From NCBI RefSeq assembly GCF_902652985.1, contig NC_047023.1:27094001-27158000 (forward strand): a DNA stretch of 64,000 nt. The letters are read 5' to 3'. The position numbers and the translations under genes are program-made. This document shows positions 11,960-64,000 of this stretch, in pieces (positions within the stretch are counted from its first letter, which is position 1; each line of letters opens with the position of its first letter). The notes under the pieces are model-generated. The model was not told the origin of the DNA and did no database searches. It saw only the letters and a program-made list of their open reading frames with translations. This DNA comes from Pecten maximus. Taxonomy: Eukaryota.

Positions 11960-12069
11960 TGTAGCGGCCAGACCGGGGTTCGAACCCGGGACCTCCGAAC
12001 ACTAGCCGGATGTTCTACCAATTGAGCTAACCTGGTCACCATTGGTCGACCCAGTCCAGTCCCGCTACA
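11960..12069 (-). mobile_element. 110-bp TG...CA element with 8-bp terminal inverted repeats enclosing a tRNA-Thr(AGT)-like sequence (Helenus-type TRIM solo LTR candidate)
   Basis: Ends are TGTAGCGG (11960) and CCGCTACA (12069). Minus-strand 12037-11965 folds as a cloverleaf with A box TAGCTCAATTGG, anticodon loop CTAGTGT and B box GGTTCGAACCC, with mismatches in the acceptor and D stems. Confidence 0.65.
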
Positions 12070-56968: not shown

Positions 56969-58342
56969 CCATGGTATGTACTGTGGCGGTTGACCTATTA
57001 CCATTGATTACTATGGTGTATACATTACTGTGACGGTTGGCCTATTACCATTGAGTACTATGGTGTATACAGTACTGTGACGGTTGACCTATTACCATTG
57101 AGTACTATGGTGTATACAGTACTGTGACGGTTGACCTATTACCATTGAGTACTATGGTGTATACAGTACTGTGACGGTTTACCTACTACCATTGAGTGTC
57201 ATGGTGTATACAATACTGTGACGGTTGACCTATTACCATTGAGTACTATGATGTATACAGTACTGTGACGGTTGACCTATTGCCATTGAGTACTATGGTG
57301 TATACAGTACTGTGACGGTTGACCTATTACCGTTGAGTACTATGGTGCATACAGTACTGTGACGGTTGACCTATTACCATTGTTTACCATGGTGTATACA
57401 GTACTGTGACGGTTGACCTATTACCATTGAGTACTATGGTGTATACAGTACTGTGACGGTTGACCTATTACCATTGAGTGGTATGGTGTACACATTTCTA
57501 TAACGGTTGACCTATTGCCATTGAGTGATATGGTGTACACATTGCTATAACGGTTGACCTATTGTCATTGAGCACTATTGTTTATACAGTACTGTGACGG
57601 TTGACCTATTACCATTGAGTACTATGGTGTATACAGTACTGTGACGGTTGACCTATTACCATTGCGTACTATGGTGTATACAGTACTATGACGGTTGACC
57701 TATTACCATTGAGTACTATAGTGTATACATTACTGTGACGGTTGACCTATTACCATTGCGTACTATGGTGTATACAGTACTGTGACGGTTGACCTACTAC
57801 CATTGAGTACTATGGTGTATACAGTACTGTGACGGTTGACCTTTTACCATTGTTTACCATAGTGTATACAGTACTGTGATGGTTGACCTATTACCATTGA
57901 GTACTATGGTGTATACAGTACTGTGACGGTTGACCTATTACCATTGAGTACTATGGTGTATACAGTACTGTGACGGTTGACCTTTTACCATTGTTTACCA
58001 TGGTGTATACAGTACTGTGAAGGTTGACCTATTACCATTGAGTACTATGGTGTATACAGTACTGCGACGGTTGACCTATTACCATTGAGTACTATGGTGT
58101 ATACAGTACTGTGACGGTTGACCTATTACCATTGAGTGTCATGGTGTATACAGTACTGTGACGGTTGACCTATTACCATTGAGTGTCATGGTGTATACAG
58201 TACTGTGACGGTTGACCTATTACCATTGAGTACTATGGTGTATACAGTACTGTGACGGTTGACCTATTACCATTGTTTACCATGGTGTATACAGTACTGT
58301 GACGGTTGACCTATTACCGTTGACCTATTACCGTTGAGTCAT
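56969..58342. repeat. Minisatellite B, 47-bp unit, ~29 copies
   Basis: Unit TACTGTGACGGTTGACCTATTACCATTGAGTACTATGGTGTATACAG; the array ends at the LINE 5' junction with a 14-bp duplication GTTGACCTATTACC x2. Confidence 0.97.
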
Positions 58343-58461
58343 GGTCTCCAAGAAAGCTGGGTCCACGTCCTGAGACTGGGTGCACTGGTGCTCTGCCCAC
58401 ATCGATTGTTTCGGGGGTTATGATCGGTGTGCGTTGGGTATTTGTGTAGCAGAAGGCTTTC
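58343..58461 (+). ncRNA. HDV-like (delta-like) self-cleaving ribozyme at the LINE 5' end
   Basis: P1 GGTCTC(58343-48)/GAGACT(58372-77) with G1.U; P2 GAAAGCT(58352-58)/GGCTTTC(58455-61); P3 GGG/CCT; L3 TCCACGT; P1.1 CC/GG(58378-79); long P4 58381-58448; J4/2 G-C(58450)-AGAA. Confidence 0.8.
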
Positions 58462-58834
58462 ACAGCAGCTCCAATTTGAGCCAACCTGTTTGCCGTGGGT
58501 TGCATCTCGTAATCTGGGGAAAGATGATCCTGGTGGTTGAAACACACCACTTTGGCTTCGGACTCCAGAGAGACGAGAGATAGTACGGGCCCTGTATTAT
58601 CAATCGGCTGGTCACGCCGAGCCCGGGATATTTGATATCCAGAGGGCGGTGGCTTAGGGTCAATCGCGAGAGAATAACAATTTTCGCACAAAACAAAATC
58701 GTATTCTTTCTCGAGTATATTACTCTGTGTAACCCTGACACTTCGGCGCTGGAGAGCCGCGCCTCAAGCAGTGTCCCCTTGTTGGGCTCCGAGGAGGGTG
58801 GGGTCACGAGTAATGAATCACATAACTACTTAAC

Positions 58835-60274
58835 ATGTCTCAAATAAACCCAAAACAACAAAACCAAATCAAACCAAACCAAAATGATAACCTCACCAAC
58901 ACAACGTCCGAAACGACTTTCCCTCAGTATCTCCTTATATCAGCGAAGGAGACTGGGAAGAAAATATCATCGCTATCACCCATCATCATCCAAAAAACTA
59001 TTAAAGGATGCCTTGGTACTGCCAAATCCGTCAAGCCCTTGAGATCGGGAGACCTCCTTGTTGAGGTTTTCCGCAAGCAGCAGGCGGATAATCTCCTGAA
59101 ATTGTCGGAATTCTCTGGGATCAGTGTCCATGTTAGGGCCCATCAGTCTCTTAACTTCAGCAAGGGGGTAATCAGATGCCCTGCCTTGCAGAACGACACT
59201 GACGCAGAGATTCTGCAACATTTCAAATCGGAGAATATCCCGATCTCGGAGGTAAGGCGGATCAAAATAAAACGCCAAACAGTAAGCACCAATACTTTCG
59301 TCCTCACGTTCGCAGTGCCAAACCTTCCTCCATCGGTAATGATAGGTTACATGAGATGTAACGTCTCGCCCTACATACCGAATCCTCTACGATGTCGTAA
59401 CTGCCAGAGATACGGCCATCATGAGGACAGATGCAGGCGAAGGGAGGTTTGCGAACACTGCGGACGAGAGGGCCATAACGACACGGATAGCTGTGATACC
59501 ACCGGCAAACGATGTGTTAATTGCAAGGGCAACCATGCAGCCTCATCTCGAGACTGTCTTTCCTGGAAGAAGGAGAGGGAAGTTCTGCGGGTAAAGTATA
59601 CCCGCAACATTTCCTTCCCTGAGGCCAGGAGAGCGGTCGAGAGTAATGACCCTGCTGCGTTGTCCTATGCATCAATAACAAAATCCAAAACACAACAGCA
59701 TCAAATTACAGTCAGCGATGCGAAAGTACAAGCTTACTTTGATAAGCCAGCTTTCTGTGCGGAGGTACCACCTTTGATGGACGAAAGGAATGACAAGATT
59801 CTTTTCGGTTTGGCATCCCGTTTCAAGTCAGGAAGGGTAGCGTCTAAGACCACCTCAACATCAGTTAGACCTTCCCAGCCTGACGAAACGGCAGTTATCA
59901 AGACCAATATGCTAGCACCTCCAGCACATACACCCGCACGCCATATAACACAAACATCGAAGCCGAGGGTCACCCACCACAGACGGACTGTATCACAGCC
60001 GTCAGACCTTAATAAGATTGCTGGTAACACCAATAAACGACCAGCAACCACACCACCTCAAGACCAACGAAAACCGAAGGTAAAGCTACACAGAGTACCT
60101 TCCTTAAACAACACAAAGCCTAGCAAAGGCTCAAATGACCCTATCCATGGTCATAACAGGTACGACATTCTTGCGGACGACAGTGAGTTTGGTGACAGCA
60201 GCAATGCTGTCACCAGACAACCTACACCAAGTAGTCTTGTCAGTCCAAAGAGCGTCCATCACGAACCTGGATAG
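58835..60274 (+). CDS. LINE ORF1p, gag-like nucleic-acid-binding protein (479 aa)
   Basis: LRSGDLLVEV and YIPNPLRC motifs; three zinc knuckles CRNCQRYGHHEDRC, CEHCGREGHNDTDSC and CVNCKGNHAASSRDC; ISFPEARR; low-complexity C-terminus. Confidence 0.93.
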   Translation: MSQINPKQQNQIKPNQNDNLTNTTSETTFPQYLLISAKETGKKISSLSPIIIQKTIKGCLGTAKSVKPLRSGDLLVEVFRKQQADNLLKLSEFSGISVHVRAHQSLNFSKGVIRCPALQNDTDAEILQHFKSENIPISEVRRIKIKRQTVSTNTFVLTFAVPNLPPSVMIGYMRCNVSPYIPNPLRCRNCQRYGHHEDRCRRREVCEHCGREGHNDTDSCDTTGKRCVNCKGNHAASSRDCLSWKKEREVLRVKYTRNISFPEARRAVESNDPAALSYASITKSKTQQHQITVSDAKVQAYFDKPAFCAEVPPLMDERNDKILFGLASRFKSGRVASKTTSTSVRPSQPDETAVIKTNMLAPPAHTPARHITQTSKPRVTHHRRTVSQPSDLNKIAGNTNKRPATTPPQDQRKPKVKLHRVPSLNNTKPSKGSNDPIHGHNRYDILADDSEFGDSSNAVTRQPTPSSLVSPKSVHHEPG

Positions 60275-63200
60275 TGGACAGCAATACGAACAATTTTATC
60301 ATACAATGGAACATACGCGGACTAAGGGCAAATTTAGAAGAGTTTCAAAACTTATCTAAAGAATTTAGACCTGCCTTATTCTGCCTGCAGGAAGTCATGT
60401 TAAAAAACCCAATTACTTTCAGAAATTTCTCGCTCTACAATAGCATCGCAACGGTAGGAAACAGAGGTGGCGCAGCTGTAGCTGTCCATAAAATTATTCC
60501 TCACAGACTTATCACGTTAAACACAAATTTACAGGCTGTTGCTGTTTGTGCGACTTTACACAGACAAGTAACTGTCTGTTCAATTTATCTTCCTCCTAGT
60601 ATTGCTTTCACTAGTGAGCAACTTAATAACCTCGTCTCGCAACTCCCAGCACCATACATAATTCTCGGAGATTTTATTGGGCATAACAGTCTGTGGGGCT
60701 CCCCGAACACAGATGAGAGAGGAAGACGTATTGAGGAATTTATAGATAAAAACAACCTGTGTCTTGTTAACAATAATACCCCAACATATCTACATCCTGC
60801 TACAGGCTCTCGTACCCACATAGACCTATCATTATGCCATCCATCCATTTTACTCGATTATGACTGGAGGGTAAATGATGATCTATGTGGGAGTGACCAC
60901 TTCCCTATTTTTCTTCGGAATATTGGGACCCCTCTTGATAAACCACTTCCTCGATGGAATGTGCACAGGGCGGATTGGGGCCAATTTAAACACCTGTGTA
61001 ACGAGGAGCTTACTGTAGAAAAATTCACTAACCTGGATGACCCAATTAAAACATTCACTGAAACGATAACTTCTATTGCCACAAAAATGATACCAAAGTC
61101 CGTCCCAAAACCTACAAAGTTCCTTTTATCTGAAGAATCTTTTATCAATAGATCCGGCCGAAAGGCAGCTCTAAGACGATTCCTGACTTCCCCTACAACT
61201 GAAAATTACAATAATTTTAAAATTTGGAGGGCGAAGGCTCGGCGATCTATTAAGTCCGACAAAAAGAATAGCTGGAAGGAATACATTTCTAAAATATCTT
61301 CAAACACATCATCAAAAAAGATATGGGATCAGATACGAAAAATAAGTGGAAAACGAAAAACGGCTCCAGCATCCCATCTTATCAACAATAGCCAAATTTT
61401 CTCTTCTACATCTGAAATTGCAAATGCATTTGCTAAAAATATAGCCCATAACTCATCCGCCAAAAATCACTCCAAAAAATTCCAAACTTTCAAAAAAGAC
61501 AAAGAAAAGAAACGTCTTAACTTCAAATCATCCAACACAGAGAGTTACAACAAGCCTTTTGATCTCCAGGAGTTGCTTGAATCGCTAAAAAGATCGACCG
61601 ATTCAGCAGCTGGGCCAGATGAAATTCCGTATCAATTCCTGAAACATTTACCAGAATCATCATCACGATGTCTCTTATATATTTTTAATCAAGTATTCGC
61701 TTCCGGTAAGATCCCCGAGTCTTGGAAGGAATCTACAGTTATTCCAATTCCAAAACCTGGTAAGGACGCCAATGAACCAAATAATTATCGCCCTATCTCT
61801 CTAACAAGCTGCATCTGTAAAACACTTGAACGGATGATAAACAATGGACTAGTTTGGTTCCTTGAATCCAATAATATTTTGAGTCCACTCCAAAGCGGAT
61901 TCAGAAACCGCAGAGGAACAGTAGACCACCTGGTCAGATTAGAAACCTTTATTCGAGAAGCTTTCGCAAAGAAGGAACATCTTGTTGCTGTGTTCTTTGA
62001 TCTGGAGAAAGCATACGATACTACATGGCAATATGGTATTATGAAAGACTTGCATGAAATTGGTGTACGTGGGAATCTCCCTAAATTCATTTCAAACTAC
62101 ATATCTGACAGACATTTTAAGGTTCGCGTTGGCTCAACGTATTCTGAAACAGCTAAACAGGAAATGGGAGTCCCTCAGGGTGGGATCCTTTCCGTAACTC
62201 TTTTCGGTCTGAAAATCAACAGTATAACTAAATGTCTCGGTAAGTCAACTGAAGGGTCTCTATTTGTTGATGACTTCTTGATCTGCTATAGGTCGAAAAA
62301 CATGCACACGATAGAACGACAACTTCAACAATGTTTGGGCAAACTACAAACATGGGCAGATGAAAACGGCTTCAAATTTTCCAGATCAAAAACTGTCTGC
62401 ATGCACTTCTGCCAAAAACGAAAGCCACATAATAATACCGATCTAACATTAAATGGAAGCAAAATTCCAGTTGTAGAACAAACCAAATTCCTCGGACTAA
62501 TTTTCGATTCAAAACTCTCCTTTGTTCCACATATTAAACACCTAAAGGATAAGTGCTCAAAGGCAATGAATATTTTACGCGTACTATCCCACACCGACTG
62601 GGGTGCGGACCGTGAAATGCTCTTGCGCCTTTATAGGGCACTTATTCGATCAAAACTCGACTATGGGTCCATCGTTTATGGATCGGCACGGAATTCTTAC
62701 CTGCAAATGTTGGATCCTATCCATAATCAAGGATTACGTCTAGCACTTGGTGCTTTCCGAACAACACCAGTGCAGAGCCTGTATGTAGAGGCAAATGAAC
62801 CATCTTTAAATGACAGAAGGAAAAAACTTTCTCTTCAATATGCCGCCCAATTGAAATCCAACCCGAAAAATCCGGCTTTTGACCTTGTTGTCAATCCGCA
62901 ATACCAAAACATATTTACTCAAAACCAAAAACTCTTACCAACATTTGGCATTAGAATTTCGAATTTTCTTCATGAACTTAACATAAGCTTAGACAACATA
63001 GGCGAATACACCGTATCGGATGTACCGCCATGGCTTGTCGAAACACCTGATATTAACCTTACTCTACACGTGAGGGCAAAATCGAGTGCATTACCCGAAG
63101 AACACAAATCCTCCTTTCGGGAATGCATTAAAGATTTTCCCGATCACGTTCAGATCTACACTGATGGCTCAAAAGATGGAGTAAAGGTCTCCGCAGCATG

Positions 63201-63942
63201 CTATTCCGATCACCATTGCTCTTCAATCCGCTTACCAGATGGTGCCTCTATCTTCTCTGCGGAAGCATGTGCCATCGATTTGGCCCTCGACCATATCGAA
63301 GAACAACGCATTAGAAAGGCAATCATTTGTTCCGACTCTCTATCTGTCCTTCAGAATTTACAATCACGAGATCCAAAGAATATACTCATACAAAACCTTG
63401 TTTTACGAATATCTCGTATCTTAAAAATATGCAAAATAACACTATTTTGGATTCCGAGCCATGTCGGAATTAAAGGCAACGAACTTGTTGACCGCCAAGC
63501 AAAACTTGCTCTAAATCTGCAACAAACAAATATTAAAATACCATATACAGATTTCAAACCTATAATTAGTTCTGCCATTCAGAGTAAATGGCAGCAACGC
63601 TGGTCTCTCGAGAAGAGCAACAAACTTTTTAAAGTACAACCAAAACTTAAAACATCAAAACCAAGTCGGAAGGATCGTAGAGAGGAAATAGTCCTCTCTC
63701 GGCTCCGTACCGGGCACACATATCCTACTCATTCGTTCCTTTTGAAACGAGAGGATCCACCGATGTGTTATGCATGTGATGCTCAATTCACAGTGCAGCA
63801 TTTTTTAATAGAATGTTCCGATTTCAAGCACATTCGTGATAAATACTTTCGAGTCCCGGACATGAAAACCCTTTTCAGTTCCGTGGACTCGAAAACAATA
63901 TTTAGCTACTTGAAAGAAATCGATCTATTTTATAGACTTTGA
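60274..63942 (+). CDS. LINE ORF2p: APE endonuclease, reverse transcriptase, RNase H, CCHC (1222 aa, GTG start)
   Basis: APE: QWNIRG, CLQE, GDF, IDL, SDHFPI. RT: YRPISL, QSGFR, FFDLEKAYD, GVPQGGILS, LFVDD, KFLG. RNase H: IYTDGS, SAEACAI, SDSLS, WIPSHVGIKGNELVD. C-terminus: CYAC...H...C. Confidence 0.95.
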   Translation: MDSNTNNFIIQWNIRGLRANLEEFQNLSKEFRPALFCLQEVMLKNPITFRNFSLYNSIATVGNRGGAAVAVHKIIPHRLITLNTNLQAVAVCATLHRQVTVCSIYLPPSIAFTSEQLNNLVSQLPAPYIILGDFIGHNSLWGSPNTDERGRRIEEFIDKNNLCLVNNNTPTYLHPATGSRTHIDLSLCHPSILLDYDWRVNDDLCGSDHFPIFLRNIGTPLDKPLPRWNVHRADWGQFKHLCNEELTVEKFTNLDDPIKTFTETITSIATKMIPKSVPKPTKFLLSEESFINRSGRKAALRRFLTSPTTENYNNFKIWRAKARRSIKSDKKNSWKEYISKISSNTSSKKIWDQIRKISGKRKTAPASHLINNSQIFSSTSEIANAFAKNIAHNSSAKNHSKKFQTFKKDKEKKRLNFKSSNTESYNKPFDLQELLESLKRSTDSAAGPDEIPYQFLKHLPESSSRCLLYIFNQVFASGKIPESWKESTVIPIPKPGKDANEPNNYRPISLTSCICKTLERMINNGLVWFLESNNILSPLQSGFRNRRGTVDHLVRLETFIREAFAKKEHLVAVFFDLEKAYDTTWQYGIMKDLHEIGVRGNLPKFISNYISDRHFKVRVGSTYSETAKQEMGVPQGGILSVTLFGLKINSITKCLGKSTEGSLFVDDFLICYRSKNMHTIERQLQQCLGKLQTWADENGFKFSRSKTVCMHFCQKRKPHNNTDLTLNGSKIPVVEQTKFLGLIFDSKLSFVPHIKHLKDKCSKAMNILRVLSHTDWGADREMLLRLYRALIRSKLDYGSIVYGSARNSYLQMLDPIHNQGLRLALGAFRTTPVQSLYVEANEPSLNDRRKKLSLQYAAQLKSNPKNPAFDLVVNPQYQNIFTQNQKLLPTFGIRISNFLHELNISLDNIGEYTVSDVPPWLVETPDINLTLHVRAKSSALPEEHKSSFRECIKDFPDHVQIYTDGSKDGVKVSAACYSDHHCSSIRLPDGASIFSAEACAIDLALDHIEEQRIRKAIICSDSLSVLQNLQSRDPKNILIQNLVLRISRILKICKITLFWIPSHVGIKGNELVDRQAKLALNLQQTNIKIPYTDFKPIISSAIQSKWQQRWSLEKSNKLFKVQPKLKTSKPSRKDRREEIVLSRLRTGHTYPTHSFLLKREDPPMCYACDAQFTVQHFLIECSDFKHIRDKYFRVPDMKTLFSSVDSKTIFSYLKEIDLFYRL

Positions 63943-64000
63943 TGTCTTTTACGTTACTGTCTTTGACGTTCTATTTATAACAAAGTTCACATAATCTATT

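Follow-up and report, generated by a model that had tools for sequence, protein, structure and literature searches.

The window, the whole stretch of 64,000 nucleotides of the scallop genome that was analysed, ends within a long interspersed element (LINE) of 5873 bp. The LINE lies on the forward strand and begins at position 58343 with a 5' UTR of 492 bases. The first 119 nucleotides (58343–58461) form the candidate ribozyme considered here. The remainder of the 5' UTR (58462–58834) includes blocks that are kept in foreign LINE lineages and is about 66% identical between two subfamilies, A and B, of the scallop family. ORF1 (58835–60274) is open, encodes 479 amino acids and contains CCHC zinc knuckles at residues 187 and 206; a Pfam search with ORF1 returned no match. 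ORF2 (60274–63942) is also open and encodes 1222 amino acids, which include an AP endonuclease, a reverse transcriptase and an RNase H domain (Pfam PF14529, PF00078 and PF00075) and a C-terminal CCHC-like motif at residue 1165. The 3' UTR starts at 63943 and fills the window to position 64000; the LINE continues for about 208 bases beyond the window and ends in a (CAAA)n tail. A preliminary description, made from the letters of the window, had called the element an RNase H-bearing LINE of the I/Nimb type, and the Pfam domains of ORF2 and the CCHC knuckles of ORF1 bear out the RNase H and the I part of this label. Because of this combination of AP endonuclease, reverse transcriptase, RNase H and a CCHC-type ORF1, the LINE is assigned by domain content to the I superfamily, an assignment that does not tell Nimb and Ingi apart. 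Nimbus and Ingi elements have both been reported from molluscs (PMC11203168).

The LINE is flanked by a 47-bp satellite (56978–58342). TRF counts 28.6 copies from 56978 to 58323, and the array picks up again where the (CAAA)n tail ends, some 208 bases outside the window. The presence of satellite on both sides, together with an imperfect target duplication of about 19 bp, indicates that the LINE was inserted into the array. It is an intact-looking insertion inside the array, not an element that merely succeeds one. Between the 5' and the 3' copy of the target duplication there are two substitutions and a gap of 2 bases. In the window copy the junction between satellite and LINE is uncertain by 3 bases, since GGT is also satellite sequence. 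The satellite unit at the 5' junction is irregular (58305–58337), with a 14-bp piece, GTTGACCTATTACC, present 2.4 times directly before the LINE. Far from the LINE, a tRNA-like sequence on the reverse strand (11966–12036; 31.5 bits, just over threshold) is the only Rfam match in the window at the gathering threshold. Insertions of the LINE are dispersed in the genome, and the family is young and probably still active.

Predicted fold of the first 119 nucleotides

The preliminary description placed a complete HDV-like self-cleaving ribozyme at the 5' end of the LINE. All of the elements that it named (P1, J1/2, P2, P3, L3, P1.1, P4 and J4/2) were recovered at the same coordinates and in the canonical order. 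The 5' strand of P1, GGUCUC (58343–58348), pairs with GAGACU (58372–58377) to form 6 bp, of which the first is the wobble G58343.U58377. G58343 is the predicted +1, with the cut 5' of it. J1/2 (58349–58351) is CAA, for which older copies and subfamily B read CAU in the alignment. P2 consists of 7 bp, including one U.G, between GAAAGCU (58352–58358) and GGCUUUC (58455–58461), the latter being the end of the ribozyme as located by both the descriptor and the nested minimum free energy (MFE) fold. P3 (58359–58371) has the strands GGG (58359–58361) and CCU (58369–58371) and closes a 7-nt L3, UCCACGU (58362–58368), in which position 1 is U and positions 5–6 are C-G. The CC of L3 (58363–58364) pairs with the GG that directly follows the 3' strand of P1 (58378–58379, within 58372–58379) to form P1.1. 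P4 (58381–58448) is a long, stable hairpin of 68 nt whose distal part differs between subfamilies, and at its base two purines, G58380 and G58449, are in contact. J4/2 (58450–58454) is CAGAA, in which C58450 is the candidate catalytic cytosine. The CNRA context assigned to this cytosine was upheld in a J4/2 of 5 nt: all of 32 aligned copies and subfamily B have C58450, and the R and A-A are also invariant, while N is A in family A and U in family B; in a third lineage, C, J4/2 reads CCAAA or CAAAA. The 6-bp P1, entered as a caveat in the preliminary description, is confirmed, and 6 bp is normal in R2 ribozymes (PMC3774820).

Nested MFE folding yields P2 and P4, and the 5' domain folded alone yields exactly P1 and P3. 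Only P4 is thermodynamically outstanding (z about -5; -5.5 for a typical copy and -4.0 for subfamily B), and the z-scores of the whole motif and of the 5' domain are weak. The window copy departs from nearly all other copies at two positions. Its P3 reads CCU where the others read CCC, and it therefore has a G.U in this helix. At 58443 it has U, which gives a U.U in P4, and the A found at the equivalent position of the other copies closes P4 into 13 continuous pairs.

A check with an HDV descriptor had been proposed and was carried out with a strict version, which required G1.U, a P1 of 6–7 bp, J1/2 of 0–7 nt, P2 of 5–8 bp, P3 of 3 bp, L3 of 6–8 nt, two Watson-Crick pairs in P1.1, a closed P4, C-N-R-A and the 3' strand of P2. 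The sole match in the window, on either strand, is 58343–58461 on the forward strand. The same descriptor had no match on both strands of 438 kb of related LINE loci (876 kb) and matched 32 sites in 24 Mb of Markov-simulated sequence. This rate, about 1.3e-6 per base, corresponds to about 2400 expected matches on both strands of the 918-Mb genome. Since a few thousand chance matches are expected in a genome of this size, a descriptor match alone proves little. Matches to a relaxed descriptor were junk in AT-rich sequence and were rejected. The proposed comparison with covariance models was negative: no Rfam family, including those of HDV type (HDV ribozyme, CPEB3, drz-Agam and HDV-F-prausnitzii), matched the candidate at the gathering threshold or, with the 311-base region 58250–58560, at E<=10, and the candidate is outside every curated Rfam sequence family. 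Rfam also had no match over 20 related LINE loci, and a pattern scan of viral contigs had none. In the scallop genome, the P3/L3 core of the window's own type (the A-type), when N6 and GG come after it, has 49 matches; the reversed control has none. All the matches listed for the core carry the P1 3' strand of the family or differ from that strand at one or two bases.

HDV-like ribozymes are known from the 5' ends of several LINEs, namely R2, L1Tc/ingi, baggins and RTE (PMC6765202; PMC4035085), and have been shown for Dong and R4 as well (PMC3774820). The U and G of L3 in HDV-like ribozymes form a conserved reverse-wobble pair (bioRxiv 10.1101/2022.09.22.508989). The scallop motif shares with the CPEB3 ribozyme the nested double pseudoknot, the G1.U at the cut site, a 3-bp P3 and a 7-nt L3. 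As had been noted earlier, the scallop loop UCCACGU is one base from the CPEB3 loop U20 U21 C22 A23 C24 G25 U26 (bioRxiv 10.1101/2022.09.22.508989). This one-base departure restores the two-pair P1.1 of the HDV type. P1.1 of CPEB3 is one G-C pair plus U-U, whereas that of the scallop is two G-C pairs, as in HDV. Further differences are the 6-bp P1 of the scallop, its 68-nt P4 hairpin (short in CPEB3), its 5-nt J4/2 (4 nt in CPEB3) and its position at the 5' end of a LINE rather than in an intron; the Rfam CPEB3 model did not match it. With the genomic HDV ribozyme it has in common the order of helices, two G-C pairs in P1.1, G1.U, the wobbles of L3 U and G, and the purine-purine contact at the base of P4, which is G40/G74 in HDV and G58380/G58449 in the scallop. 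HDV differs in its 7-bp P1, its J1.1/4 junction, its 4-nt J4/2 and its role in rolling-circle replication.

Among retrotransposons, the ribozymes of R2 and of R4/Dong resemble the scallop motif in that the element RNA starts at its 5' end with an HDV-like fold, which frees it from a co-transcript (PMC3774820). They also have a P1 of 6–7 bp, a highly variable P4 and a core of L3, P3 and P1.1 that is kept within lineages; in R2 itself P1 typically has 6 or 7 bp and P4 varies (PMC3774820). R2, with its restriction-like endonuclease and single ORF, inserts specifically in rDNA and relies on Pol I for its transcription, whereas the scallop LINE has an AP endonuclease, two ORFs, an RNase H domain and dispersed insertions. 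A parallel in domain content is Pr77 of the trypanosomatid L1Tc/ingi elements. These are LINEs with AP endonuclease, reverse transcriptase and RNase H, the first ~77 nt of which are an HDV-like ribozyme, and the ribozyme was inherited across the L1Tc/ingi clade (PMC4035085; PMC3185411). Pr77 differs in its protist hosts and in doubling as a promoter, and no sequence similarity between it and the scallop ribozyme was detected. A literature search found no report of HDV-like ribozymes in the Nimb clade or in mollusc LINEs; it did not reach key papers and does not prove absence.

The 5' terminus and the sister lineages

A genome search with the first 498 bases of the LINE gave at least 42 near-identical matches, and the ribozyme alone gave 67 first-look candidates. 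Of these insertions, 24 that are independent, with mutually unrelated upstream flanks, start exactly at GGTCTCC, and one further such copy was found separately. The remaining copies of family A are 1–6 bases shorter or have a substitution in the first two bases. The common start of the 24 insertions indicates that 58343 is where the RNA template of the family has its 5' end, and this is the base predicted as +1 by the fold. The earlier placement of the cut between 58342 and 58343, at the true 5' terminus of the element, is thus supported by 24 independent copies, the window copy itself being ambiguous by 3 bases. The sequence upstream of the A, B and C insertions showed no TATA box at a constant distance. 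On contig C5 (19707866–19722194 of G000; loci L133 and L139), five tandem units of 3.4–3.6 kb each contain only bases 1–186 of the LINE. This stretch, the ribozyme plus a downstream hairpin, has identical flanks from unit to unit and is a solo 5' fragment that segmental tandem duplication has multiplied.

Subfamily B, a sister of about eight copies, was found by using the conserved downstream hairpin of the 5' UTR as an anchor. In family A numbering, A and B are 95% identical in the 5' part of the core (1–43) and 94% identical in the 3' part (102–119), and 59% identical in distal P4 (44–101); the rest of the UTR is at about 66%. Distal P4 of subfamily B has a different sequence and is still a long hairpin. 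The basal 13 bp of P4 differ between A and B at four places, and all four differences preserve pairing by exchange of wobble and Watson-Crick pairs. J4/2 is CUGAA in B and CAGAA in A, so that only the N of C-N-R-A differs. A core that is kept while distal P4 and the N of J4/2 are free to vary is, as read from these alignments, what selection on an HDV-like ribozyme would be expected to leave. The conserved 5' block runs past the ribozyme to about nt 186, and part of its conservation could reflect constraint at the level of DNA, as in a promoter.

Covariation among copies, which the preliminary description had proposed as a check, was found in part. P4 is supported by the comparison of A with B, but P1, P2 and P3 show no compensatory change in either subfamily. 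Within family A, 0 pairs are changed on both sides and the core is invariant; P1, P2, P3 and P1.1 lack compensatory evidence in A and B because these helices never vary there. A genome-wide search for the A-type core with a covaried P1 found just two decayed duplicate fragments, the changes of which are uncompensated.

Lineage C is a third sister lineage, with an ORF2 class of 1226 aa, and matches a metagenome contig (L034) with an ORF2 about 90% identical to that of the window. Its UTR is 64% identical to that of A, against 66% for B, and over the first ~150 bases no alignment with A is possible. These bases can be folded into P1 CUUCCGG/CCGGAAG, J1/2 GA, P2 GGAUUACU/AGUAAUCU, P3 ACC/GGU, L3 UUGCCGU, a long P4 and a J4/2 of CCAAA (CAAAA in older copies). 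The topology is the same as that of A and lies at the homologous position, with entirely different helices; the sequence directly 3' of P2 is homologous between the two lineages. At least 12 copies of lineage C, whose flanks are unrelated, have the first C of their own P1 as their first base. In this lineage the helices do vary: older copies have the compensatory P1 versions CCUUCGG/CCGAAGG and CCUCCGG/CCGGAGG, and changes in P2 keep pairing. Four pairs in the alignment are changed on both sides; 10 of 500 shuffles reached this count, and 1 of 500 reached the covariation score. The first pair of P1 is C-G, without the G1.U wobble, and P1.1 consists of one G-C pair and a U.U, as has been described for CPEB3. 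The A-type was not detected by a covariance model built on the C-type 5' domain. Given this result, and the lack of a covaried A-type P1 elsewhere in the genome, the relation between A and C rests on position and architecture.

Foreign LINEs and the downstream hairpin

A second descriptor was anchored on L3 (loop U-N3-C-G-N) and required all helices. In the 876 kb of foreign LINE loci it matched only L034 and L054 (308–413), on the sense strand and upstream of ORF1. L054 has an ORF2 about 54% identical to that of the window and a C-type P3 and L3. Its P1 is CCCGCAG/CUGCGGG, its P2 CCCCUG/UAGGGG and its J4/2 CUAAC, so that P1 and P2 are fully covaried relative to lineage C. A weaker version of the C-type core is present in L078, with about 35% identity to the window's ORF2. 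The recurrence of the architecture in L054 and, more weakly, in L078 suggests that it is old in this LINE group. A BLAST search of the ribozyme against the foreign LINE loci found no similarity in the first ~120 nt.

Other foreign candidates were rejected. L039 (165–310) has a plausible HDV-like arrangement with P2 CCUCCG/CGGAGG, P3 GUG/CAC, a 10-bp closing stem of P4 and J4/2 CUAA, with the conserved hairpin about 70 nt downstream of it. A G.U at +1 is missing and, as a further HDV-like ribozyme, the locus is indistinguishable from the background of the descriptor. L035 (1290–1383), L117 (1920–2016), L108 (40–116) and L052 (140–232) have a different fold, with no HDV topology and no Rfam match. 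In these four loci the place of the ribozyme is taken by a module consisting of an enclosing CCCC/GGGG helix, an H-type pseudoknot and a small hairpin.

The downstream hairpin of the 5' UTR (58481–58503, forward strand) lies about 20 nt downstream of the ribozyme and has 6 bp and an invariant 10-nt loop, GUUUGCCGUG. It is kept in 20 LINE lineages from several sources, with 25 compensatory cells in the alignment, a number that none of 500 shuffles reached. The hairpin is probably a signal of the LINE group for protein binding or packaging. P3 and L3 of lineage C (L166, 99–111; ACC-UUGCCGU-GGU) closely resemble the loop of this hairpin (58487–58497 in the window). The likeness could reflect a duplication or a motif that is bound by the same protein, and because of it lineage C is not safely read as purely catalytic.

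Origin of the 5' end and rival explanations

It is reasonable to conclude that 58343–58461, the first 119 nt of the LINE RNA, is quite probably a genuine HDV-like ribozyme that processes the 5' end, as the preliminary description had proposed. The features of the fold, the terminus of the family and the conservation between sister subfamilies agree on this reading, and catalysis is their prediction. In the proposed mechanism, transcripts begun upstream of the LINE, or at it, would fold co-transcriptionally, and C58450 in J4/2 would catalyse cleavage of the bond 5' of G58343. The product RNA would begin at G1 with a 5'-OH and would retain the whole ribozyme. Target-primed reverse transcription would then copy the trimmed RNA to its end, which would account for the start of full-length genomic copies at G1. 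The steps that we infer are cleavage and its chemistry, the source of transcription, and any role that the folded ribozyme may have in the translation of ORF1. The preliminary description went further and suggested that the element needs no promoter of its own and would cut itself out of read-through transcripts of the upstream satellite array; this is a conjecture, and satellite borders the insertion on both sides.

Alternatively, an internal promoter might start transcription at G58343, and the 5' fold might be a structured leader that does not cleave and resembles HDV in architecture only, serving for example as a protein binding site, a protector of the RNA end or a translation element. 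LINEs with an internal promoter likewise have a sharp 5' end (PMC3774820), so the terminus by itself fits both explanations. The extent of the conservation between A and B, to about nt 186 and across a separate conserved hairpin, is compatible with such a promoter, and so are the missing Rfam match and the lack of the G1.U wobble in lineage C. The resemblance of the C-type P3/L3 to the hairpin loop is a hint of a protein-binding motif. Against a leader of this kind stands a full core signature in register with the terminus, with G.U at +1, U...CG in L3, a 2-bp GC P1.1 and C-N-R-A directly before P2, for which the chance rate is about 1e-6 per base. In addition, the variation sits where HDV-like ribozymes tolerate it, in distal P4 and the N of J4/2. 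Nor would a promoter rule out cleavage, since the promoter and ribozyme of L1Tc share the same bases (PMC3383444). We therefore regard a promoter with a non-cleaving leader as unlikely. Accidental agreement of a GC-rich, hairpin-rich 5' UTR with the HDV descriptor seems very improbable. The ~2400 matches expected on both strands of the genome and the weak z-scores of the whole motif and 5' domain would allow it, but the match begins at the terminal base of the family, the core has kept ~95% identity while the adjoining UTR fell to 66%, and two more lineages have the same architecture in the same place with different sequences.

If the HDV-like ribozyme reading is correct, the scallop candidate extends the trimming of LINE transcripts to another LINE group and another animal phylum, an extension of a known principle rather than a new one. 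It would support the view that many LINEs without a recognised promoter depend on transcription from outside, followed by self-trimming. The most interesting aspect is the pairing of alternative cores in sister lineages. Two HDV-like cores may occupy the homologous 5' position, a canonical one in A and B and a variant in C that recurs in L054 and, more weakly, in L078, and it is possible, if doubtful, that both cleave. In that case the HDV-like ribozyme would be an old, exchangeable 5' module of a branch of RNase H-bearing LINEs, an ancestry in common with the L1Tc/ingi ribozyme would be possible, and a natural ribozyme with C at +1 would exist. This young bivalve family with intact ORFs provides three natural variants: the canonical core, its counterpart in which P4 is swapped, and a variant core with C at +1.

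Finally, full-length copies of the LINE group are also present in contigs filed as bacterial or archaeal (L113–L132), including Thiodiazotropha, Solemya gill symbionts, Sulfurovum and Chloroflexota MAGs. These copies are almost certainly host DNA, from a mollusc or other animal, that was mis-binned into symbiont assemblies.
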